From the NCBI RefSeq assembly GCF_000143415.4, contig NW_003314344.1, positions 442,336 to 506,335 of the forward strand: DNA of 64,000 bases, in the 5' to 3' direction. The notes beneath the pieces were generated by a model that searched no databases, had not been told where the DNA came from, and saw only the letters and a program-made list of their open reading frames with translations. This document shows, piece by piece, positions 6,256 to 59,883 of the stretch; position 1 is the stretch's first letter; each line of letters starts with the position of its first letter. The translations under genes and the position numbers were made by a program. The stretch comes from Selaginella moellendorffii. Taxonomy: Eukaryota > Plantae > Lycopodiophyta.

Positions 6256-7962
6256 TCAAGAGCTCTTCTCCAATATCTCATTCCTGTCCGCGACCACTGG
6301 CGATGGAGCAACCATCTCCATTTCCACCTTGAGCTCCGTGTCAAACGGTGCCTTGCTGGCCTGCTCTCGACCCAGCGGAGACGGCTTCGGCGAAGACGAT
6401 GGCGATGGCGATGACGACGAAAACGACGAGCCTTCCCGATTCCTTCTCGGTTCCTTGACGTAAAACTTGTCATCGCGGACGTCGTAGCGAGCTGCCGTTC
6501 GGACCTCTTGACACAGCGAGCACAGACTACAGAACATCCACAGTGCACAGTCTGTCATATTCGGCTGCCCGCAGCACCACCTCTGACCAGGAAGCCCGAA
6601 AGTTGTCCGCATCTTGATCCTCCAGAAACCACCATACATGAGCCCGAAGACGCACAGCACTATCCCTGCGAATCCCAGCCCCTGCCTCACGTACCTGTTG
6701 TCGATGTTGCCCGCTGCCAGAAGGAAGATCCAGTATGGAGCCGAGCATATGAGCAAGAACGTCGCAATGTGGACGAACCGGTTGCCGAAACCCAGCCTAT
6801 CCATGTTCCACCCGAAGACGCAGAATCCACACAGCGTAGACATGAGCGCCACCTCCCGGTCCATGCAGCAATCTAAAACACCACCTTGCCACTCGGGCCG
6901 CTCCACCAGCTTGCCATCTCTCGAAGCGAAAGACTTCCTACGTTCCAAAAGGCTGTAGAACCGACCACCTGTGCGACTCGGAGCTTGGAGCTTGGGTCTA
7001 GCATCGGCTTCTAGATCCTCATGGAGGTGTAGCTGGCCGGCCTCTTCGTCCTGGACGTAGTCTCTTCCCAGCGGGCTCAAAGTGTTGTAGATCCCAGCCG
7101 CGGCAGCGCAGCCGATTGCTGCTGCCAGGCACACCGCCACTCCGATCGCTGGCCTCTCCGATCTCCTGTACCCCCAGTTGAGTCCACACAGCGCGTACTG
7201 TGAGAAGCAATTGAGATGGAGGAGGATCACCACGACGAGCATATGACCCCATTCGTGTGGTTTCCTCAGACCGTCTTTGCAATAGATCTTCCGGAGCGCG
7301 AGGACGTCGGACCTGTTCCAGCGGTGGAGCTGATAGAGATGGAGGAAGCGCTGGGGATGAAGGTAGAGACACATGAGCGTGAAGAGAGCGTTGAGTATCT
7401 GGTTGTTCACTTCGTAGTAGGCGTCCCTGGAGCTCTTCTTGGGAATGGCATGGTTGAGCATGCCCGTCATGACCATGAAGAGAATAGCCCCCGAGACCGC
7501 CACCGCCAGGATCCACACCAGGAGAGCTAAGTTCTTGGGATTTTTCAGCCACTCCATAGCGTAGTTCTTCATGATCTTCCAGCGAATTTCGCCCACCCCT
7601 GGAAGGTTGACGCCCTCTCTCAGCCGGATCCCGTGACTGCTGCTCGCGGGCTCCTCCACGTCGGGGGTGTTGATCGAAACGAGCTCTCGGGCTATGGCGA
7701 TCCTGCGGAAGGTCTTGGTCGGGGATAATACTGGCTGGGCTTGCGATGCCAACGAGGAGTAGCCCAGAGTGAGGCGCTGGAAGAACGCTAGATTGGAAAT
7801 CTGCCATCGCTCGCTCGCCTCCTGCTGCTGCTGCTGCCGCGCTTCATCCTCGAGCGTCTTGCCAAGATCACTACTCACCTCTTTGCCGTTTTGCAGCAGC
7901 GATCTCTGCGACGACGAGGACAGCGATCCAACCAGATGTAGAGCGTCAGGGGCCTGCGCCAT
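6256..7962 (-). CDS. PLAC8-family membrane protein with DUF2985 (intronless)
   Basis: 568-aa ORF with TM segments, NNQILNALFTLMCLY.HP, WQGGVLDCC, CGFCVFGWNMDRLGFG and CSLCQEVRT. Confidence 0.9.
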   Translation of the reverse strand: MAQAPDALHLVGSLSSSSQRSLLQNGKEVSSDLGKTLEDEARQQQQQEASERWQISNLAFFQRLTLGYSSLASQAQPVLSPTKTFRRIAIARELVSINTPDVEEPASSSHGIRLREGVNLPGVGEIRWKIMKNYAMEWLKNPKNLALLVWILAVAVSGAILFMVMTGMLNHAIPKKSSRDAYYEVNNQILNALFTLMCLYLHPQRFLHLYQLHRWNRSDVLALRKIYCKDGLRKPHEWGHMLVVVILLHLNCFSQYALCGLNWGYRRSERPAIGVAVCLAAAIGCAAAAGIYNTLSPLGRDYVQDEEAGQLHLHEDLEADARPKLQAPSRTGGRFYSLLERRKSFASRDGKLVERPEWQGGVLDCCMDREVALMSTLCGFCVFGWNMDRLGFGNRFVHIATFLLICSAPYWIFLLAAGNIDNRYVRQGLGFAGIVLCVFGLMYGGFWRIKMRTTFGLPGQRWCCGQPNMTDCALWMFCSLCSLCQEVRTAARYDVRDDKFYVKEPRRNREGSSFSSSSPSPSSSPKPSPLGREQASKAPFDTELKVEMEMVAPSPVVADRNEILEKSS

Positions 7963-43528: not shown

Positions 43529-45329
43529 CTAATCTTCTTCGAGTAGCTCCAAGTTGAGTTGCATCACCGCTTCTTCCACTGCCTGGATCATTGCTCCAGG
43601 GAAAACATCCGGCTGCAGCTCTCGGAGTAAGATATGGAGCCGGCCCGCTTTCGAAGTCGTTGTCGTTCCAAACTTGAGAGCATAGAAAGAGAGCGCCAGA
43701 GACAACACGTCGTCCTCCTCCGCATACGGCAACATATCAGAAGGAGACCGGTACCCGACAGTTCCCACCATCTCGCTGTAAGCACGGCTCTCGCCTTTGA
43801 AGCACGACGCATCGTAGTCGTTTATCTTGAGCACGTTGCCCGGAAACACGACCAGGTTGTCTGGCTTCACGTCACGGTGAAGAACACCCTTGGAATGGAG
43901 ATGCTTGAGCCCCCGGTACGCCTGATTCCACATATCACTCATCGCTTCCATGTCGGCAATGTGCTCCCGCCCCAAAGGCTGGCCATAGCCCTCGAGCTCC
44001 AGAAAGCCAAACACGTCATTGTTCTCCCCAATGCTCACCATCCCCCAGTTCACAAGCCTCCGCACGTTGGAGTGGCCGTCGGATGCTGCATGGATGCGTC
44101 GCTCCATCTCAGCACTCGATGGCGAGCATATCTTGAGGACATTGAACGCCGATCGTCGGAGCACCACAAGAGACTTCTTGCCATAAGCCACCGGCGTCAG
44201 ATCTGAGAGCGGGATATCAGTGCTTGGTCCCACGACACGAACACTCAGCACCGGTAGATCGTACATTCGCTGCAGTTCTTCCGTATAGGAGACCAACGTA
44301 CAGAATCCAGGCATCGGTTTAGGAGGTAGAACGTCCTTCATGCTGATGCTCTCCAAGCTGGTCTCATTTAGCCACGAAAGCTTCATCAGCACAAAATCCG
44401 GACTGAAGTCGGCCAGCTGCAGAGGCAAAGGAAATCCCGGCGTCACCTGAACCTTATCCGTCTCTCGCAGGTACTTGACAATCCAGAACCTGTCCATGCG
44501 GCAAAACAGGCACCCCAGACGAGCCGTCTCATCCGTTCCCTCGATTCCCGTTTTCAGATAGTCTGCTTCCTGCTTTATCAGCGTAGCATTGGCCACCATA
44601 CCCGTCTCATCCTTATCAGTTGCATAGAAAACCTCTGTTTTCACTTCCGACACAACTCTTGGCTTGCCGCATATAAAGCCCTGCAAGCCCTGCCCACCGA
44701 AATTCAAGCCTTTCTGACCAAACGAAGCAGCTCGTAAGAAGGCCAAGACGCCGGGATAATAGGCGCTCTCCTTTGGCTTCACCTTGGCAAGCCTGAGCTC
44801 TCTCAGGCTTGTAAGGTCTACCTTGGCGGCCTCGCGCTCGAGCAAAGCTAGCCACTTTAGAGCCACAAGCATGGTACTCGACCGGCCGCCCAGTAGGATA
44901 TCCGGCTCCACGAGCATGGGCTCGTATACTTGGTAATCCTTCACCCTCTTCGTCTGACTCCTTGCGACTGTCACAGCGGTGTTTTCGTCCCTGCGTCGCT
45001 TGCCTGATCACCTAAGCCAAGAAATGAGCGGAGACCAAGAGCAAAAGACCAGTTACTTTACCTTCGGATCCACGCACATGAAGCGCAAAGCTCACAGGAA
45101 GTGGGCCGTCTGGTAAGTACTCCGGATTGTACCATCCATCGCCGGGAACGAGGACCGAATCCACAGAAGGCAGTTCTTCCTGCAGCCATCCCCGAAGGCC
45201 GGCCACATCGGGCAGAGTGCTGGGAACTGGCCTACCTCTCCTCCCCTTGTGCCGCAGCACTCCTTCGTCTAGTTCCGCTTCGCTTGTGGGATGGATGTAC
45301 AAAACGCGCTGCGCTCGCAGAAACGCCAT
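43529..45329 (-). CDS. Crinkler/CR-effector-like protein: N-terminal header + restriction-endonuclease-like domain + divergent protein kinase; intron ~45060-45004
   Basis: Kinase motifs VLK, E(RRIH), HRDVKPDN, INDYD, GTVGYRSP, DDVLSL. Upstream VVSEVK...QEADY...GCLFCRMDRFWIVK resembles a PD-(D/E)xK fold. Exon 1 ends FALHVRGSEG and splices in frame. Confidence 0.72.
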
Positions 45330-46291: not shown

Positions 46292-47778
46292 GCTGCGAGT
46301 TCTCCTGGAGCTTATCAGCCTTGGAACAAGACAAGAAGCGTTCTTCTCACTTGGTTGCGATGAGAGAAGCAAATAAACAAGCGCGTGCTGCGAAGGAGTG
46401 GCGCGCGCCTTCCATATGTATATAATATTCTCTATAGTGGTTGAAGAAAAATTAGCAGTCCAAATTGCTAAAGATGAGCTATTTTTAAAGCATCTGGCAA
46501 TTTTGATAACTCATGTTAAAACCCAGGGTTTAAATCAGAAATTTTAGAAAGAGAAGATTGATGTCTTACTAAAAATTCCTTTCTGAGTTGTTTTTTGCCA
46601 CTAACTAGTTTTTCTCCATTCGAGATGCTACTTTTAATATTACTTTATAATAGTTTAGTTTGGGTAAGAAATTTTTTATGGTAATGGATATACCTAGAAT
46701 ATATTTAAATATTTGAGAATATCTAATGGTTGTTATTTATTTAGATTAATCTTGTATTTATAAATTGTAAACATGTTTATAATTATAAACTTCCATTTGA
46801 TTAATTTGATTAATAAATAGGAATAACACTACTACTAAGCCCATCAAGTGTTGCTACATACAGCACGCAATAAATTATTATTATTATTATTATTGCATGA
46901 ATTGACTTAAGCTATATAATTAAGAAGCAAATCAAGTTTTAAAATTTACATACTTATATTTTCTCAAATTAAATAGATTTATGTAGCCTTTTTCCTTGAA
47001 GGGCAATAAAATAGATTATTCTTTCAGAATATTTTTTTTTTCTAAAGGATGAATAAGTATTCCAAATGTGATGAATTTCTCTATCTATTTTATTAGTGTA
47101 TATTTTTATATTCCATTTTTCTCTTACCACCTCTTTGGTATGGCAATGAATATAATTGTATATATTTGTTATAATGCTTATATTATCTATCATATGCAAA
47201 TTTATTTATTTTTTTGAGTTGCATACAAAAATATTATGTACACAATCACTTTTCAATTGCTATATTAGCAATAAAAATGTGATTATGTGCATAATATTTT
47301 TATCATGGGATATGCCCTATACACATGGTGTGATATCCTATGCAAAAGTGATCTTACACAACATAAAGTCACTACAAATTTAATAAGCACTTTTCTGTCT
47401 TGTATCACTAAGTGTAGATTTGTGATCTTTTGATTGTGATCATTTCTTTACTCTTATTTCATGCAACTATGGCTCATTTCTTATAGTTTAGAAGCATAGT
47501 TTAATTATAACATTCCCTTGGTCCCCACATCATATGTTGCAAGAAAAGCATTTAAACCACAATAACACTCTTGAGGTGATACACCCCTTCCTAGCCTCTT
47601 AACCTATAGTATTAAGATATCAGTGTGCTGTACATTGGTGTAAGTTTTTGAATTTTCATTTTCTAGGAAATCATCTAACTCAATATTATTCAAACTCAAA
47701 TATCCCAAAAATTCTTAACTAATTAAAAAAAAAGTTGCCCTTATATTTGAATTCTTATAGATAGAATTGTTTTAAACA

Positions 47779-48068
47779 TATGCTTTATTTCGTTAAAGTG
47801 GGACTTTTCATTATCCCACTTATGGTGTGTGGCCACATGCCATTTTTATAACAACAATAAAAAATTAAAGTTTTAACTTTATAATTTATAAATTAAAAAC
47901 TTTTCATATGATTTTGTGTTATAATATTGTGAAATATAAAAAAATAAATTAAAAAACTGATAGAAATATTAATAAATATTAATTAAGTACTAGAAAATGG
48001 CATGTGGACACATGCTAATTAATGTCCCACTTTACTGAATAAGTCCCACTTTAACGAAATAAAGCATA
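47779..48068. mobile_element. MITE (~290 bp) with 28-bp perfect terminal inverted repeats, nested in the left arm
   Basis: tatgctttatttcgttaaagtgggactt ... aagtcccactttaacgaaataaagcata, with TA at both termini and subterminal ccacatgccatttt/aaaatggcatgtgg. Absent from the right arm. Confidence 0.85.
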
Positions 48069-48853
48069 CATCACAACTACAAGCCCTAACCCAAAGTGTA
48101 AACCCTTCTAACATATTAAAAAAATTTTACATATGGGCATGCAATGGTGCCTTTCTAAATTAGTGTCATATATACAATTTTCTATTGAATCAATGTAAAA
48201 AAAAGTTGTGTTTTAAAGTATAATTTGTGAGTCACACATGTGTATTACAATAATTTAAACACAAGTTGCCTATCTAAGATACACTTCCCCTCATATTACC
48301 AAGTAACTCACATGTTTTATGTGAGGATAACTAAGGTAAGCTTAAGGAAGAACCATCCCCACTACCCAACAAGAGCCACTTGACAGTCAAGGACAAGAAA
48401 AGAACTTTCAAAATCTTTAAGCTTTTGCATTTTAAAAGTTTCTTTGTTTTGAAAGTTAGCCCTTAAAAACAAATTTCTACCCTTTTCAAAAATGGTAAAA
48501 AAAAAATTATTTTCTTTACCCCACCTCAAATTCATGCCATTCCACCAATGTCATTCCGCACACAATATTTCATTTTCAACTAACATAATATATTTTATTA
48601 CTGTTTACATAGTCTCAGTGTCACAGATTTAGGATTCGGACAATTTCTTTTGCAGCTCTGGCCAGTGTTAAAGCTGACATATAGCATGTGAATACATACT
48701 ACGTTATGTACAATGTTTTACAGCAAGCATACACGTAGCTCAATATAATTGGTTGCTTGCAGCAGCACGTTTTAAATATAACCAGCTCTAGAATATATAA
48801 ACTGTAGGCTTCCAAGATTCCTAGCGCTCATTCAATCGGTTGTATCCAGTCTC

Positions 48854-49277
48854 ATGCCAATGGCTCTCCGCTTTACTCTTTTTCTTGCTGTAGCATGCAC
48901 CATGGCAACGTTTATGGCATCTGCTCGTCCTGCTAATATCGGTGAGTGTGAGATGTGGTTCAGGTTTCTTGGTCACTCACATTCCCTGTGCTGCAGGAGA
49001 AGAGGTTTACGACATAACTCGGCAGAACAAGGAGGTAGCTGGCTTCGCTGAAGATCATCCTGTTAACACTGGTGAGTGTGAGGTTTCATTGGCTCTTTTG
49101 GTCACTAAGATTCTGTGTGATGCAGAAGATGATCATGGGGATCCAGCTCTCACCTTGAAGAGTTGTGCCGGCAAGGGCCACAGCTGTGCACCGTTCTATG
49201 TTCCACAGGGAGTACAGTGCTGTTCGGGGCTCCACTGCGTGGCAGCCATCTTTGGTGTTGGTGGATGGTGTGCATGA
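48854..49277 (+). CDS. Secreted knottin (inhibitor cystine knot) peptide precursor; exons 48854-48941, 48997-49071, 49126-49277; 104 aa
   Basis: Signal peptide MALRFTLFLAVACTMATFMASA, acidic pro-region, then mature SCAGKGHSCAPFYVPQGVQCCSGLHCVAAIFGVGGWCA (C-x6-C-x10-CC-x4-C-x10-C). TATA-like tatataa at ~48794. Both introns are phase-1 GT-AG. Confidence 0.85.
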
Positions 49278-52200
49278 TTGACTCTATGTTTCTTTGCCTA
49301 CATCGCAAAGGTTATAATAAGGTTTCTATTTCCTCCCTAGAATGTCGTGAGGAAAGATTGATAGAAGTTCGTGGCTACCGATTACTCAACGCTTAATCCC
49401 ATCTATTAACAATGTAGACCTCCCTGATGCCATTGCCATGAAGCAGAGTCTGACGGACAAGAAGAGGATGCCAACCCGCTCAAGAACTTCAATGCGATGG
49501 TGAAGCTCAACCACTGCGAGGAGCTCTCTCAAAACTATCGCCTCCAGGACACAACACAATACCGACTGCAAAGTTTAGACAAGTCCAGAAGTCACCATCT
49601 CGATCCTCAGGGGCTGCTGGGGGCATTCGAAGCGGGCGTACGCAGAGACCCACGACGGCGATCAAACACGAGCTTCGCTTCGTCTCGGTGAGCTCTCCGA
49701 GCCACGTCCAGTAGCCCGGCTCGGGCATGGAATCAAACACTTGCCTGGTTGTCTTCAGAAACGTACATCTTTCAAGGGTATCTCCAAGTTAAAATCGAGA
49801 AAGGATAAAATCTATTTTTACCCCACCCCGTATCAGTAGAAATCAATCAGTTCTGCTTCTCCACCTGACTGAAATACAAGAACGAAATAAGAAATATTGT
49901 GTGTGGAATGACATTAGAGAATAAATTTGTGGTGGGGTAAAGAAAATAATTTTTTTTACCAATTTTGAAAAGAGTAGACATTTGTTTTTAAGGGTTAACC
50001 TTCAAAACAAAGAAACTTTAAAATGCAAAGTGGCTTTTGTTGGGTAGTTAGTTATCCTCACATAAAATGTGTGGTGCCTTTTTAAATTAGTGCCATATAT
50101 ACAATTTTCTACATTTGACTCAATGTCAAATTTTTAAGGGTTTAAACTTTGGGTTAGGGCTTGTAGTTAGATTTTGAATGCCTTTTTTGATGTTAGAGGA
50201 TAAATTACTGAATAAAGGATCTTGCCTCCTTATTTGGAGTGGATTAATTGTAGGTAATAAAAAAACAAATAAGAATAAGGGCAAGGGCAATCTTTTTTTA
50301 ATTAGTTACAAATTTTGGGGTTGGGTGATCTCCCAAAAAATGAAAATTCAAAAACTTACACCAATGTACATTGCACTGATATCTCAATACTATAAGTTAG
50401 GAGGCTAGGAAGGGGTGTATCACCTCAAGAGTGTTATTGTGGTTTAAATGCTTTTCTTGCAACATATGATGTGGGGACCAAAGGAATGCTATAATAAAAC
50501 TATGCTTCTAAACTATAAGAAATGAGCCATAGTTGTGTGAAATAAGAGTAAAGAGATGATCACAATCAAGAGATTATAAATCTGCACTCAATGATACAAG
50601 ACAAAAAATTGTTTGTTAAATTTGTGGTGACCTTATATTGTTTGAGATTAGTTTTGCATAGGATGTCATGCCATGTATATAGGGTATATCCCATGACAAA
50701 AATATTATATACATAATCACATTTTGATTGTTAATATAGCAATTGAAAAGTGATTGTGTGCATAATATTTTTGTATGCAACTCAAAACAAACAATAAATC
50801 TACATATGATAGATAATTTAAGCATTTTAACAAATATACACAATTATATTCATTGCCATACCAAAGAGTTGGTAAGAGAAAAAAACAAAATGGATAGAGA
50901 AATCCATCACATTTGGAATATTCATTCATCCTTTAGAAAAGAAAAAACTATTCTGAAAGAATAATATATTTTATTCCCCTTCAAGGAAAAGGGCTACATA
51001 AATTTATTTAATTTGAGAAAATATAAGTATGTAAATTTTAAAACTTGATTTGCTGTTTAATTATATAGCTTAAGTCAATTCATGCAATAATAATATGTTA
51101 TACGCACCAACACTTGATTTGCTTGTTATTCCTATAAATTAATCCAATTAATCAAATGGAAGTTTATATAATTATAAACATGTTTACAATTTATAAATAC
51201 AAGATTAATCTAAATAAATAACAACCATTAGATAGTAAAGTATTCTAGAATATTTACACTGTTCGTAGAGCATTTCGTATCAAAGCCTATCATGAGGCCC
51301 TGCATTGTCCAGGGCAGTCGGCAATGAGATCCAAGTAGCTCTGCCAGAAGTTTTTCCTTGTTTCTATTGATCACAGTATCAACTGCAGCCTTTTATGTGG
51401 CACTGGTGAGCATTGTCCATGGGATAACCAAACAGTCGACTTTACTTACAATAGACTCGCGACTTGCGACTGATGTGCATCTACCAAACGAACAAACATG
51501 AGCTTTTGTTTTCAGAGTACCTTTCCAGACGCGATGTAGCACAAGACAATGGACAGGTGGTGCGGGCGATGTATCTTGTGGCAAGAAAAGTCGAAGGAGA
51601 AAGAAAACCACAGAAGCCTGCTCGAAGCCGTTCTCCATTCCAGCCTGCAAAGAGACGTAAGGTGGTGCAAATGGGCTCACCTCTTGGATGATGGCATAGG
51701 TAGGGTACAAATTTTGCGAGTGACAAAAACATTTCTTGATCATTCATTATTCGATGACTTACATCCACTTGGAGGCAAGATCCTCCTGTCAACCTGGGCG
51801 AGTGAACGCTAATTCATTATCCAGGATGGAGCCTGATTTACCTTGATACTCTGGAGGATGAATCATCAAATCCACAGCGCCCATAACAAACCCAATTGGA
51901 GCGTATAGTGCCCAATACACTTCCGTGGCTGTGCAATGCCGACAGCTCCTTTTCCTTCCTGTCAAACTTCTAGTTTTAAAACTGATTGATATACTCTTCT
52001 TTAGGTCTAGTATCTATATATCCTGCTTTTCATGAACTGCCACCTTTCTCCGCCCTAAAACTATCAAGGGAACAAGACAAGTGAAAAGGAAAAGGCTAAT
52101 ATCTGAAGCGGATGTGAAATTCTTTTCAGCTCTCACCATAAGCTCGTGAAGCCCCACTCGTGGTTAGGATTTCAATTTTGAGAGCACTCAGCCAATCATC

Positions 52201-52499: not shown

Positions 52500-52599
52500 N
52501 NNNNNNNNNNNNNNNNNNNNNNNNNNNNNNNNNNNNNNNNNNNNNNNNNNNNNNNNNNNNNNNNNNNNNNNNNNNNNNNNNNNNNNNNNNNNNNNNNNN
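52500..52599. other. Assembly gap (N run)
   Basis: 100 N characters. Confidence 1.
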
Positions 52600-52666
<67 letters not shown>

Positions 52667-52670
52667 ATAT
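52600..52670. repeat. (TA)n/(TATG)n microsatellite
   Basis: Seen directly in the sequence. Confidence 0.95.
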
Positions 52671-52702
52671 GAGGACCTTATATACATATATATAAGGTCC
52701 AA

Positions 52703-54183
52703 GTGTATGGTTACGATGCCATATACTAATATTAAGATAATAAGATTTTGGTAGCTATCAGATTGATTTCAGTCTAGACCACTCACTTCTGTATATAAAC
52801 TAGGGTTTTTGGGCTGATTGTCCTTAAGAAGTGCTTAGATTTGGGATTTTGGTTTAGATTTAGTTTTTGCATTGTCTTGATCTAGCTTTTTCCATTTTCT
52901 TTCTTTTTTTCTTTCTTTTCAGGATTTTAGTTTAGATCTAGCTTTTTGTATTATCTAAATCTCCCTTTCCTTTTAACTATTTTTCATTTTTCTTCTTTTG
53001 CTCTTTTCTTTTCATTCATTTTCATAGTAGATCAGCAATCTTTTCCTCCTTTAACTCTGGAGCAGCAATTGGTACAAATGCTTGATGCTATGTGATTGCA
53101 ATTGAACAACTAAACTCAATTGATGGTGGCATTTACGGCATGTGGTACAACTCCTTGTTTGATCTTATGGGATTTTTTCAATACGACCAATCAGGTTTTT
53201 CCTCTTCAATAATAAAGTAACGATAGTATGATCACCTTCAAATAACATTTGAGAACTATGTAGATATATATGAAGTTTCTCAAAACCCCAGACTATTGCT
53301 AAACACTCATTTTCTATTGTAGAGTGGTTCACTTTCCCTAGTTATAATGTATAACTTATATACGCAATAGTATAGCATTAACTAGGCATACTTGGGCTCT
53401 TTTGCATTAACACACCCCAAAACTAATATCAAAAGCATCCACATGCAAAATAAAAGGTCTGGGAGACACTCCAATCCCCATGACAAACCATTGTACCATT
53501 GCAATACTGTCCTTTAGAAATATATGGGAAACTCACTATATCATCTCAAAAATGATATATAGCAATTACCGTGAAGTGATCGAACCAAAGGTATATATCA
53601 TCCCAAGGATTCCCACGAAAGGACTCCAACCGAACGTGAGGATTGGCACCAAGAGCAGGAGTTGTATCATGTGCCATGAATGCTACCATCAATTGAGTTT
53701 AGTTGTTCAATTGCAATTGTATAGCATCAAGCAATTATACCTACTACTACTCTAGAGTCAAAAGAGGAAGAGATTGCTGATCTGCCATGAAGATGAACGA
53801 AAAGGAAAGAGCAAAAGAAGAGAAATGAAAAAAAGCTAAAAGGAAAAGGAGATCTAGACAATGTAAAAAGTTAGATTTAAACTAAAATCTTAAAAGGAAA
53901 GAATAAAAGAAAGAAAATGAAAGAAGTTAGATCTAGACAATGCAAAAGCTAGATTTAAACCAAAATCCCAAATCCAAGCACTCTTCAAGGATAATTAAAA
54001 ATGCCTCTTAACTCCATTAATGTGAGTGCATGGGATATGGAAAGGGAATACAGAAAATGTGTATGTCAATTAGCCCAAAAACCCTAGCTTATATACAAAA
54101 GTGAGTGGTCAAGATTGAAACTAATTCGACCGTTATTAAAATCCCACTACGCTAATATTAATATACGGCATCATAGCCACACA
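52703..54183. mobile_element. Foldback/MULE-like non-autonomous element with ~450-530 bp diverged inverted arms (52703-53160, 53650-54183)
   Basis: gaccactcacttctgtatataaactagggtttttgggctgattg vs caattagcccaaaaaccctagcttatatacaaaagtgagtggtc; ttgcaattgaacaactaaactcaattgatggt vs accatcaattgagtttagttgttcaattgcaa. Confidence 0.85.
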
Positions 54184-54214
54184 CACACAGACACACAGAC
54201 ACACAAACACACAA

Positions 54215-54265
<51 letters not shown>
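54178..54265. repeat. (CA)n(TA)n compound microsatellite
   Basis: Seen directly in the sequence. Confidence 0.95.
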
Positions 54266-54951
54266 AAATTTATCTTATATATTATGAATTATCTAATTTT
54301 ACTTTAGATTCTCTTTTGCCATATATGGTTTTTAAAGAACCTCATTAATTTTTTTATATTAAAGATTGAATTTAAAATTCTAATGGTTACCTTAAAATTA
54401 TTATATATTTGAATATAATTGCTAGTGACATGTGATTCTTGAAGCTGCAAGGGCAGCACAACTATGATCCCATAAGCTACCAAGAAATCTAGAGGTTGGA
54501 GCTTGAGCCCATAGCCATATGGAACATTTAGAAATGGACAAATTGTGGCCAGTAAAAGTACATGGTACAGTGGTGAAATCCTGCTAAATTGCACTTTGTC
54601 CCCAAATATAAATTTTGAAGAAGAGGATTGAAAAATCTGTAGCAAAATGGCACTGTTAATTTAAAACTCAACCACACTATCAACCAGTCAACAATGGAAT
54701 GCGGTTGGACGGAATTGAACGAGTGACCCATTGTTCGATTTGGTAGGTAAGCTCATCCAGTCAGCGATTTGCCACGTGCCAGTGTCTAATTCGTCCTGAC
54801 GGGGCCCATTGAAGTATAACAAAAAGGGTTTCACGGGAGTGAGGCGACCTCGTTCTTTCAGGCTCTTCCAAGGCGGCGGCAGCGGCATTCGACGCTCTCG
54901 CAGCTCAGATCTCTCTCGATCTCTCTCGATCTCTCGGCGCTATCAAGGTGA

Positions 54952-57066: not shown

Positions 57067-59883
57067 ATGGGGGGTAAGCGCTTGGATTTCCTCACAGCGA
57101 AGGCGCCGCCCGGCTACGTCGCTGGCTTGGGCCGCGGCGCCACCGGTTTCACCACTCGATCGGATATCGGCCCCGCCAGAGCGGCGCCGGAGACCACCAC
57201 CACCAGCTTTGGGCGGGGCAGGGGCAAAGCGGCGGCGCCGCCTATTGGCGGCGGTGGTGCGGAGGACGAGGAAGATGAGCACGAGGTGAGCGGGTATGGC
57301 CAAATCCAGAACCAAGAGTTTGACGAGTTTGAGGGTAACGATGTGGGGCTGTTTGCCACAGGTGTGTATGACGCCGACGACGATGAGGCCGACGCGGTGT
57401 ATGAGAGCGTCGCCGCCAGGATGGATTCGCGACGCAAGGAGCGACGGGAGGAGCGGCTCAAGCGCGCGATCGAGCAGCGCCGCGAGAGCACTCCCACGAT
57501 CAAGGAGCTCCTGGCAGACGTGACGCGAACTCTGGTGGAGCTGCCCCCGCAAGAGTGGGAGAAGATCCCCGACGCGACGAATCTGTCGCGGCGGAAGAAG
57601 AAGGCGCGGTTTGAAAGCTACGTTCCTCCGCCGGACACACTCCTCGAGAAGGCCCAAAAGGAGCGTAACACGGTCCTGGACCAGGGTGGTGGCGGCGCTA
57701 CCGTGGTTGGCGGCGCCGCTAGTAGTAACATCAGCAGCCTCACAGCCGTGGGCGAGGGACGCGGCACGGTTCTCTCGCTCAAGCTGGATCGCTTGTCCGA
57801 CTCGGTCAGTGGGCTCACGGTCGTGGATCCCCGAGGCTACCTCACCGATCTCAAGAGCATGAAGATCACCAGCGACGCGGAGATCTCCGACATGAAGAAG
57901 GCGCGGCTGCTGCTCAAGTCCGTGATCCAGACCAATCCAAAGCACGCGCCGGGGTGGATCGCGGCGGCGCGGCTGGAGGAGGTGGCGGGGAAGATCACCG
58001 CCGCGCGGAGCGTCATCCACCAGGGGTGCCAGGAGTGTCCGAAGAACGAAGACGTGTGGCTCGAGGCATGCAGGCTGACGAGCGGCGCCGCCGCCAAGGG
58101 AGTGATCTCCGCGGCAGTGAAGGCGATCCCCACGTCGGTGAAGCTGTGGATGGCGGCGGCGGCGCTTGAGGAGGAGAGCGCCGCTAAGAGCCGCGTTCTT
58201 CGCAAGGGGCTCGAGTTTATACCCGACTCGGTGCGGCTGTGGAAGTCGGTGGTGGAGCTGGCGAGCGAGGAGGAGGCGAGGATCTTGCTGGGCCGCGCCA
58301 CCGAGTGCTGCCGCCACCACGTGGAGCTATGGCTGGCGCTGGCGAGGCTGGAGACTTACGACAAGGCGAGGGTGGTGCTCAACCGAGCTCGCGACGCGCT
58401 GCCAACCGAGCCCATGATCTGGATCGCGGCGGCCAAGCTCGAGGAGGCGGCGGGGAATGGCTCTCGCGTGGCGGAGATCATCGACCGCGCTATACGGTCG
58501 CTGGAGAGGCTCGGGGTGGTGATCGACCGCGAGTACTGGATGAAGGAGGCGGAGGCGGCGGAGAGAGCGGCGGCGGCGGGGACTTGCGCGGCGATCGTGA
58601 GGAGGACGATCGGGGTGGGCGTGGAGGAGGAGGACAAGAAGAGGACGTGGGTGGCGGACGCGGAGGAGTGTCTCAAGAGGGGATCGGTCGCGACCGCGAG
58701 GGCGATCTTTGCTCACGTGCTGGAAGAGTTTTCTGGAAAGAAGAGCGTGTGGATCAAGGCGGCGCTGCTGGAGAAGGGGCATGGATCGAGGGAAGCGGTG
58801 GACTCGCTGCTGGAGCGCGCTGTGGGGTGCTGTCCAAAGGCCGAGGTGTTGTGGCTCTTGGGAGCCAAGGAGAAGTGGCTAGCGGGAGACATCGATGGAG
58901 CTCGAGCAATCCTCACGGCGGCATACGTTGCGATCCCGGAGTCTGAGGAGATCTGGCTGGCGGCGTTCAAGCTTGAGTTTGAGAGCCGCGAGCCGGAGAG
59001 GGCCAGGATCTTGCTGGCCAAGGTCAGGGAGCGCGGTGGCTGCTCGGAGAGAGTGTGGATGAAGTCGGCGATGGTGGAGCGGGAGCTGGGAAAGGTGGCG
59101 GAGGAGAGGCGGCTGCTCGAGGAGGGGCTCAAGCGCTTCCCGGGATTCCACAAGCTGTGGCTGATGCTCGGGCAGCTCGAGGAGAGAACTGGGAACCTCG
59201 CCGCCGCGAGGAGCGTGTACGAGCGAGCGCTGGAGAGGTGTGATCCAGCGACGAGCACGCCAGTGTGGCTGGCGGCGGCGGAGCTCGAAGAGAAAGGTGG
59301 CAGGATCGCGAAGGCGAGGGCGCTGCTCACGACGGCGCGGCTCAAGAAGAAGGAGGATCCGGAGCTGTGGCTGGCGGCGATTCGAGCGGAGGCGCGGGCG
59401 GGGAAGTGGAAGGAGGCGGAGGCACTCATGGCGAAAGCGCTCCAGGAGTGCCGGAGGAGCGGGATCCTGTGGGCCGCGAGCGCGGAGATGGCGCCGCGGG
59501 CGCAGAGGAAGGCCAGGAGCTTCGATGCGGTGAAGAACAGCGAGCAGGATCCGTTCGTGGTTGCGGTGGTGGGGAAGTTCTTCTGGCAGGACCGCAAGGT
59601 TGACAAGGCGAGGAGCTGGATCAAGCGGGCGGTGGCGGCGGCGCCGGATATCGGGGACTTTTGGGCGGTGCTGTATCGGTTCGAGCAGGGGCACGGGAGC
59701 ACGGAGGCGATCGAGGAGGTGGTGGAGAGATGCAAGGCGGCGGAGCCGAAGCACGGCGAGCAGTGGATCCGCGTGTCCAAGGCGGTGGAGAATGCGCATC
59801 AAGGGGTGGAGTTCGTGCTAGGAAAGGTGGCGGCGGGGTTTGGGAGGGACGATGGTATCGTCATGCCGAGCTCCAGGCCATAG
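57067..59883 (+). CDS. PRP6: Pre-mRNA splicing factor PRP6 / STABILIZED1 (intronless)
   Basis: YVAGLGRGATGFTTRSDIGPAR, KARLLLKSVIQTNPKHAPGWIAAARLEE, HAT/TPR repeats and EPKHGE.W. Confidence 0.96.
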   Translation: MGGKRLDFLTAKAPPGYVAGLGRGATGFTTRSDIGPARAAPETTTTSFGRGRGKAAAPPIGGGGAEDEEDEHEVSGYGQIQNQEFDEFEGNDVGLFATGVYDADDDEADAVYESVAARMDSRRKERREERLKRAIEQRRESTPTIKELLADVTRTLVELPPQEWEKIPDATNLSRRKKKARFESYVPPPDTLLEKAQKERNTVLDQGGGGATVVGGAASSNISSLTAVGEGRGTVLSLKLDRLSDSVSGLTVVDPRGYLTDLKSMKITSDAEISDMKKARLLLKSVIQTNPKHAPGWIAAARLEEVAGKITAARSVIHQGCQECPKNEDVWLEACRLTSGAAAKGVISAAVKAIPTSVKLWMAAAALEEESAAKSRVLRKGLEFIPDSVRLWKSVVELASEEEARILLGRATECCRHHVELWLALARLETYDKARVVLNRARDALPTEPMIWIAAAKLEEAAGNGSRVAEIIDRAIRSLERLGVVIDREYWMKEAEAAERAAAAGTCAAIVRRTIGVGVEEEDKKRTWVADAEECLKRGSVATARAIFAHVLEEFSGKKSVWIKAALLEKGHGSREAVDSLLERAVGCCPKAEVLWLLGAKEKWLAGDIDGARAILTAAYVAIPESEEIWLAAFKLEFESREPERARILLAKVRERGGCSERVWMKSAMVERELGKVAEERRLLEEGLKRFPGFHKLWLMLGQLEERTGNLAAARSVYERALERCDPATSTPVWLAAAELEEKGGRIAKARALLTTARLKKKEDPELWLAAIRAEARAGKWKEAEALMAKALQECRRSGILWAASAEMAPRAQRKARSFDAVKNSEQDPFVVAVVGKFFWQDRKVDKARSWIKRAVAAAPDIGDFWAVLYRFEQGHGSTEAIEEVVERCKAAEPKHGEQWIRVSKAVENAHQGVEFVLGKVAAGFGRDDGIVMPSSRP

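Follow-up and report, generated by a model that had tools for sequence, protein, structure and literature searches.

A long inverted repeat enclosing a complete cystine-knot-like peptide gene in the spikemoss Selaginella moellendorffii

We analysed a 64,000-nucleotide stretch of the genome of Selaginella moellendorffii (NCBI RefSeq assembly GCF_000143415.4, contig NW_003314344.1, positions 442,336 to 506,335 of the forward strand; hereafter the window, whose own numbering is used throughout) and found in it a unit of about 4.5 kb in which two long AT-rich arms, inverted relative to one another, enclose a core bearing a complete three-exon gene for a predicted secreted peptide with six cysteines (Table 1). 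The repeat, its ends, its base composition, the gene and the family to which the gene belongs are established by the analysis. Among known kinds of element the unit is most like a foldback or Pack-type DNA element, and we tentatively favor, ahead of the other origins weighed below, the reading that it is an old non-autonomous element of this type.

Architecture of the inverted-repeat unit

Comparison of the window with itself by BLASTN returned arms and a core of the sizes estimated by eye in a preliminary description of this DNA (~1.85 and ~1.35 kb for the arms, ~1.3 kb for the core; exact lengths in Table 1). The outer ends (46720-46787 and 51167-51234) are 100% complementary over the terminal 68 bp, 47116-47679 and 50320-50883 are 90% complementary, and smaller blocks go on inward to 48571 and 49891. 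By BLASTN, the outer parts of the two arms align over 964 columns at 86.6% identity with gaps counted, and the innermost block, beginning at 48424, aligns at 86.5%; MAFFT alignment of the outer ~960 bp yielded 835 matches, 76 mismatches and 53 gap columns confined to a few indels (91.7% identical), and over the whole arms we counted 102 transitions vs. 68 transversions. Beyond both outer ends, inverted or direct homology was no better than in shuffled controls, i.e. the repeat stops abruptly, and the 25-nt terminal word is present in the window at the two ends of the unit only (expected 0). The unit has, in short, the terminal or sub-terminal inverted repeats with defined ends by which foldback and Pack-MULE-type elements (MULE, Mutator-like element) are recognized.

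The two compartments also differ sharply in composition, with a guanine-plus-cytosine (GC) content of 27-28% in the arms vs. 46% in the core and 43-44% in the flanks; AT-rich DNA extends ~300 bp leftward beyond the left arm. The unit contains no runs of N, and the nearest assembly gap (100 N at 52500-52599), which is the only one in the window, lies 1.3 kb downstream.

The left arm is longer than the right mainly because it carries a nested 290-bp foldback, similar to a miniature inverted-repeat transposable element (MITE), plus other indels; this insertion has ACAT on either side if its ends are read as ATGC...GCAT. A short block that matches the other arm in direct rather than inverted orientation is best read as a micro-inversion inside one arm. 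Sub-repeats (D2/I8) are present within the arms, as is an internal palindrome, shared by both arms, whose two copies are predicted to fold into strong hairpins (z -6.4 and -9.1) and which gave miRNA-shaped matches in Rfam, all of them sub-threshold. The open reading frames (ORFs) of the arms had no Pfam match and the arms held no transposase or coding remnant, while Pfam searches of arms and core together found no transposase or other domain. Across 46.0-52.4 kb, no Rfam family or tRNA exceeded its detection threshold, the 32-nt terminus had no match in a metagenome scan, and a scan for bacterial promoters and terminators, whose models are irrelevant for plant DNA, was empty.

We also observed a stretch of 81 bp (~47519-47600 and 50400-50480) that is perfectly identical between arms otherwise diverged by ~8%, and that exceeds the perfect run at the termini. 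Gene conversion may have produced this patch, or it may be a conserved element; neither an RNA structure nor an Rfam match was found for it.

The peptide gene and its family

The preliminary description placed a complete gene for a secreted knottin in the core; the gene is indeed complete, and the mature domain of its product models as a knottin. The three exons, translated individually, are identical to the 104-residue RefSeq protein XP_024517343.1 (P0014; isoform X1 of LOC112341459), and the core gene is therefore already annotated, as an 'uncharacterized protein'. Residues 1-31 of this protein are 100% identical to the translation of 48854-48946, and a NAGNAG acceptor at exon 3 gives rise to the isoforms X1 and X2. 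A word search with 48999-49274, a reading frame that runs open across the second intron, was scored on exon 3 alone and returned two 103-residue S. moellendorffii proteins. Because intron 2 is both in frame and stop-free, a product of the peptide gene that retains it is possible. We noticed in addition that introns 1 and 2, together with the last ~16 nt of the preceding exons (48920-48996 and 49050-49125), are mutual copies (score 32.5 vs. 7.7 ± 1.4 in shuffles), a likeness that reads as an internal exon-intron duplication.

Downstream of the gene, the 'unrelated coding scraps' of the preliminary description correspond to a GC-rich stretch with short ORFs, which was indeed there, although its coding nature is unproven and no family matched it: 49380-49790 has no Pfam family, no identification in the Atlas and no credible tblastx relative within the window. 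It may be the 3' untranslated region of the peptide gene and/or a captured fragment.

The mature domain, with the cysteine spacing C-x6-C-x10-CC-x4-C-x11-C, was modeled with AlphaFold 2 (AF2), and the knottin fold is reasonably supported for it because the structural neighbors of the model are nearly all inhibitor-cystine-knot (ICK) peptides. The 40-residue mature domain reached a predicted local distance difference test (pLDDT) score of 75, vs. 51 for the full-length precursor, whose model is too poor for use. ICK peptides made up nearly all rows returned by Foldseek with the mature-domain model, yet every E-value was above 0.7 (none ≤0.001); they also made up nearly all of the 54 chains that VIA-align placed at Z ≥2 among 48,161 representative chains (best Z 4.5). 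The model superposes on agelenin, an ICK peptide, at Z 4.5 (1.7 Å, 35/35 residues) and on Ep-AMP1, an ICK peptide of a cactus, at Z 4.4 (1.7 Å, 33 residues, 42% identity). Plant and animal ICK peptides such as these two, the amaranth alpha-amylase inhibitor and gurmarin likewise have six cysteines in a C-C-CC-C-C framework, here within a domain of ~30-40 residues and with cysteines invariant across all relatives, and they are likewise made as a precursor of signal peptide, pro-region and mature domain. Unlike them, LOC112341459 has a loop 2 of 10 residues and a loop 5 of 11 residues with the motif GVGGWC. By sequence the peptide falls outside the curated knottin families (Pfam Toxin_7, E 0.7; Toxin_24, E 0.97), and a PDB profile search found nothing beyond gurmarin (E 2.2); its look-alikes in the Atlas are spider-toxin clusters (score 0.81), to be taken as a lead only.

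Within the window the gene is single copy, and a minimum of five paralogs are found on three other S. moellendorffii scaffolds (Table 1). Among the close paralogs, variable columns are concentrated in the mature domain (10/38, vs. 4/67 in the signal and pro-regions; Fisher p=0.006), a distribution that is usual for defense or toxin peptides. Outside Selaginella, HMMER found a single credible relative among 1.84 billion representative proteins, the 80-residue protein A0H81_12613 of the basidiomycete fungus Grifola frondosa (P0017; E 1.7e-5, 50% identity over the mature domain), to which a profile search added the product of the adjacent G. frondosa gene A0H81_12612 (P0020); the motif common to the Selaginella and G. 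frondosa proteins spans the entire mature domain. Horizontal transfer or an extremely patchy family could possibly account for this distribution, and we treat transfer as a lead only because ~45 residues and two taxa underlie the comparison. In the literature searched, the peptide family is undescribed and its loci are unmentioned.

Table 1. Features of the inverted-repeat unit (window coordinates) and loci paralogous to its peptide gene.
Feature	Position	Strand	Remarks
Candidate 9-bp target-site duplication, left copy	46694-46702	+	CTAGAATAT; 17 bp outside the inverted repeat
Left arm	46720-48571	+	1852 bp, 27% GC, non-coding; outer part 46720-47679 pairs with 51234-50320
Internal palindrome	47225-47301		77 nt, in both arms; partner 50696-50772
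Nested foldback/MITE-like insertion	47779-48068		290 bp, left arm only; perfect terminal inverted repeats of at least 28 bp
Left-arm inner blocks	48075-48107 and 48424-48571		Pair with 50168-50136 and 50029-49891, respectively
Direct-orientation block	48145-48200		56 bp, matches 50072-50130; 95% over 40 nt, 88% (BLASTN) over 59 nt
Unique core	48572-49890	+	1319 bp, 46% GC
Putative TATA box	48794-48801	+	TATATAAA; ~53 bp upstream of the first ATG; predicted from its letters
Exon 1	48854-48941	+	Signal peptide; RefSeq start (MPMALRF...) at 48854, second in-frame ATG at 48860; followed by a phase-1 intron
Intron 1	48942-48996		55 nt
Exon 2	48997-49071	+	Acidic pro-region
Intron 2	49072-49125		54 nt, in frame, stop-free
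Exon 3	49126-49277	+	End of pro-region and 38-residue mature six-cysteine domain; stop codon 49275-49277
GC-rich stretch	49380-49790	both	52% GC, short ORFs
Right arm	49891-51234	-	1344 bp, 28% GC; reverse complement of the left arm
Candidate 9-bp target-site duplication, right copy	51245-51253	+	CTAGAATAT; 10 bp outside the inverted repeat
Paralogs LOC9629796, LOC9629800	853,333-bp scaffold		Scaffold also carries the STABILIZED1/PRP1 allele (EFJ11443)
Paralogs LOC9654912, LOC9654360	1,296,709-bp scaffold		
Paralog LOC112343373	305,859-bp scaffold		More distant

Origin of the unit

We reasoned that in an old foldback or Pack-type element the two long AT-rich non-coding arms would enclose host-like DNA with a complete three-exon gene and its own promoter, and that binding of the terminal or sub-terminal repeats by a Mutator-type transposase, provided in trans, would allow all 4.5 kb, including the gene and its promoter, to move by cut and paste. 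The arms would later have diverged by ~8% through substitutions, with indels, a nested MITE and a micro-inversion besides, and the peptide gene family would later have expanded mainly via local segmental duplication. A transposon origin, a superfamily and the capture of the gene are what we infer here; the superfamily would most likely be Mutator/Foldback-like, going by the sub-terminal inverted repeats and the candidate 9-bp target-site duplication (TSD). Such an element would account for arms that are AT-rich and repeat-like, for their sharp, symmetric ends, for a host-like cargo and for the 9-bp repeat. AT-rich arms around a host-like core fit the pattern of AT-rich termini and host-like cargo described for Pack-MULEs (PMC5861414). 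Also in favor of this reading are the restriction of the terminal word to the two ends, the sub-repeats, palindrome and lack of coding remnants in the arms, and the paralogs of the cargo gene on three other scaffolds. Because the arms have decayed (~8% substitutions, indels, the nested MITE and the micro-inversion), the unit is probably immobile today.

No direct match between the 30-bp sequences flanking the unit is longer than the candidate TSD, CTAGAATAT, which was equalled in 23/2000 shuffles and in 74/5000 pairs of random AT-rich 30-mers (~1.2-1.5% chance). Mutator duplications are 8-11 bp long and GC-poor (PMC5861414), a range inside which 9 bp falls, and 9-bp TSDs that enclose short, non-inverted termini are described in the gene-bearing Mutator/Foldback family Tm1 and in other MULEs with 'sub-TIRs' (TIR, terminal inverted repeat; PMC3169594). 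Other readings of the ends were tried and fail on sequence: abutting TSDs of 3 bp (PIF), of 5 bp with TG..CA ends (the integrase type of long terminal repeat (LTR) elements), of 8 bp (hAT) and of 9 bp, an abutting 6-bp TSD of the GingerRoot type (PMC6839031), and Helitron ends. The repeat begins and ends with TA, and a TA duplication is indistinguishable from palindromic terminal two bases.

Several observations weigh against the foldback or Pack-type reading. No TSD abuts the ends of the repeat; the preliminary description, which had found no clear TSD by eye, was right for these positions. The word CTAGAATAT occurs five times in the window vs. 0.41 expected, once in the TATA region of the peptide gene itself, and is only a weak TSD candidate because of this local over-representation. 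The perfect terminal run of 64-68 bp can be explained by gene conversion, and it is not special, because the arms also hold the internal perfect run of 81 bp. Finally, a sensitive BLASTN search with the arms and the core turned up only AT-rich noise, and no further arm copy, elsewhere in the window (59.5 kb). What stands of the 'mobile or amplifiable cassette' proposed in the preliminary description is a discrete, gene-bearing unit; its mobility finds no second arm copy within the 64 kb, no abutting TSD and no transposase remnant in its favor.

The same observations suit a local inverted duplication, in which an AT-rich stretch of ~1.4-1.9 kb would have been copied in reverse across a resident gene (e.g. 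by template switching or fold-back repair) and would then have decayed with patchy gene conversion. The missing abutting TSD and the missing further arm copies are as this origin predicts, a core with the GC content of the flanks is expected of a gene in its original place, the ~300 bp of AT-rich DNA to the left of the left arm would fit, and perfect patches of 64-81 bp in arms diverged by ~8% suit gene conversion. However, both outer ends are equally sharp and close on identical perfect sequence, the 9-bp flanking repeat would then be a coincidence (~1.5%), and the arms are repeat-like in their sub-repeats, palindrome and extreme AT content; we regard a local inverted duplication as possible but somewhat doubtful. 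The preliminary description had offered as its own alternative a composite of two separate, oppositely oriented insertions of one repeat family flanking a resident gene, and this fared worse. Arms of unequal length at ~87-92% identity would be natural for two members of a family, and the core again resembles the flanks in GC content, but the arms lack terminal repeats or duplications of their own, their inner and outer ends are unrelated, the Helitron, LTR and 3-, 5-, 6- and 8-bp TSD readings all fail, and a family with no other member in the remaining 59.5 kb would have had to insert twice within 1.3 kb, with both arms nevertheless ending on the identical base and sharing their terminal 68 bp, all of which makes a composite unlikely. 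Arm divergence is far above allelic divergence, and we find it barely credible that the unit is an assembly artefact made of two haplotypes fused head to head. The assembly does hold both haplotypes, with allelic or paralogous copies of window genes on other scaffolds, and there is the 100-N gap 1.3 kb downstream; nevertheless, the unit itself is gap-free, its core is unique, and its two arms are set apart by 76 substitutions, several indels, the nested 290-bp foldback and a micro-inversion.

To return to the foldback or Pack-type element, a bolder version of it would have a live or recently live lycophyte foldback/Mutator-like family moving a complete, expressed defense-type knottin gene, of a family known otherwise from the basidiomycete G. 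frondosa alone, that the Selaginella lineage acquired horizontally and that has spread with the element; this we consider highly unlikely.

Comparison with known elements, possible effects and neighborhood

Pack-MULEs carry mostly gene fragments, and their TIRs are typically of a few hundred bp or less, whereas the spikemoss unit has a whole gene with its promoter, arms of 1.3-1.9 kb and a candidate duplication that does not abut the repeat. In other respects the Pack-MULEs of rice and other plants are alike, with AT-rich termini around GC-richer low-copy host DNA and no transposase, their cargo being genes or gene fragments (PMC5861414). A second likeness is to the Tm1 Mutator/Foldback elements of root-knot nematodes, found around the Cg-1 gene, in which the two arms of one element are on average ~93% identical (PMC3169594). 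Both Tm1 and the spikemoss unit have non-coding composite inverted arms around a gene (transcribed in Tm1), with unrelated small inverted-repeat elements nested inside, and the short non-inverted termini that Tm1 has outside its repeat and inside its 9-bp duplication have a candidate counterpart here. Unlike the spikemoss arms, those of Tm1 consist of 14-bp tandem repeats and are shorter, and the Tm1 family is defined by many copies and a Phantom/MULE transposase, whereas one copy of the spikemoss unit is seen and its non-inverted termini would measure 17 and 10 bp, against 7 bp in Tm1. The FARE foldback transposons of Arabidopsis (Windsor & Waddell 2000), as far as they are described where PMC3169594 cites them, are plant foldback elements with long composite arms and a link to a MULE-domain transposase.

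Were the unit a transposon, it would be a rare plant DNA element that carries a whole working secreted cystine-knot gene rather than fragments, and it would offer a direct route by which defense peptides are copied and scattered. Were it a local inverted duplication, it would be a natural test case for the effects of gene-bracketing long inverted repeats on expression, orientation and stability, in a plant lineage whose small-RNA machinery may be unlike that of flowering plants. Under either origin, recombination between the arms could invert the core. Inverted repeats derived from transposable elements near plant genes are short and lie beside the gene, whereas the spikemoss arms bracket theirs. 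Such gene-adjacent repeats are reported to give rise to 24-nt small interfering RNAs (siRNAs) and to alter chromatin topology (bioRxiv 10.1101/2022.07.05.498814; Ea-IR, PMC11746138), and an inverted repeat near a defense-type gene could act as an epigenetic switch, as it likewise might here. A read-through transcript of the spikemoss unit could form a hairpin with a ~1.3-kb stem, from which small RNAs would match the arms and not the peptide mRNA. Because the peptide mRNA lies wholly in the core, any siRNA effect on the gene must act through chromatin, and by analogy it would be of the kind proposed for inverted repeats near Arabidopsis genes in the same two reports.

The other ORFs of the window are ordinary plant genes (pentatricopeptide repeat (PPR), trehalose-phosphate synthase, S-adenosylhomocysteine (AdoHcy) hydrolase and cytochrome P450), and the long ORFs at 57067-59880 and 6259-7962 encode, without a single difference, proteins listed at NCBI for S. 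moellendorffii and have near-identical copies on the 853,333-bp and 1,296,709-bp scaffolds. The order around the unit is a kinase (43.5-45.3 kb), an ORF (45.9-46.4 kb), the unit itself and ORFs of normal GC content (51.3-52.4 kb). Within the kinase region, a 481-residue ORF on the reverse strand (43529-44974), which the preliminary description had listed separately as a Crinkler-type kinase, has a partial protein-kinase match only (Pfam E 4e-19, profile positions 44-199). A second, unrelated long inverted repeat occupies 52690-54184 (arms 52703-53155 and 53657-54184, 79-85% complementary), between (TA)n at 52600-52670 and (CA)n(TA)n at 54180-54266 and beside the 100-N gap, and its 0.5-kb core holds an RNase H fragment of a reverse transcriptase on the reverse strand (53168-53332, Pfam E 6e-9).

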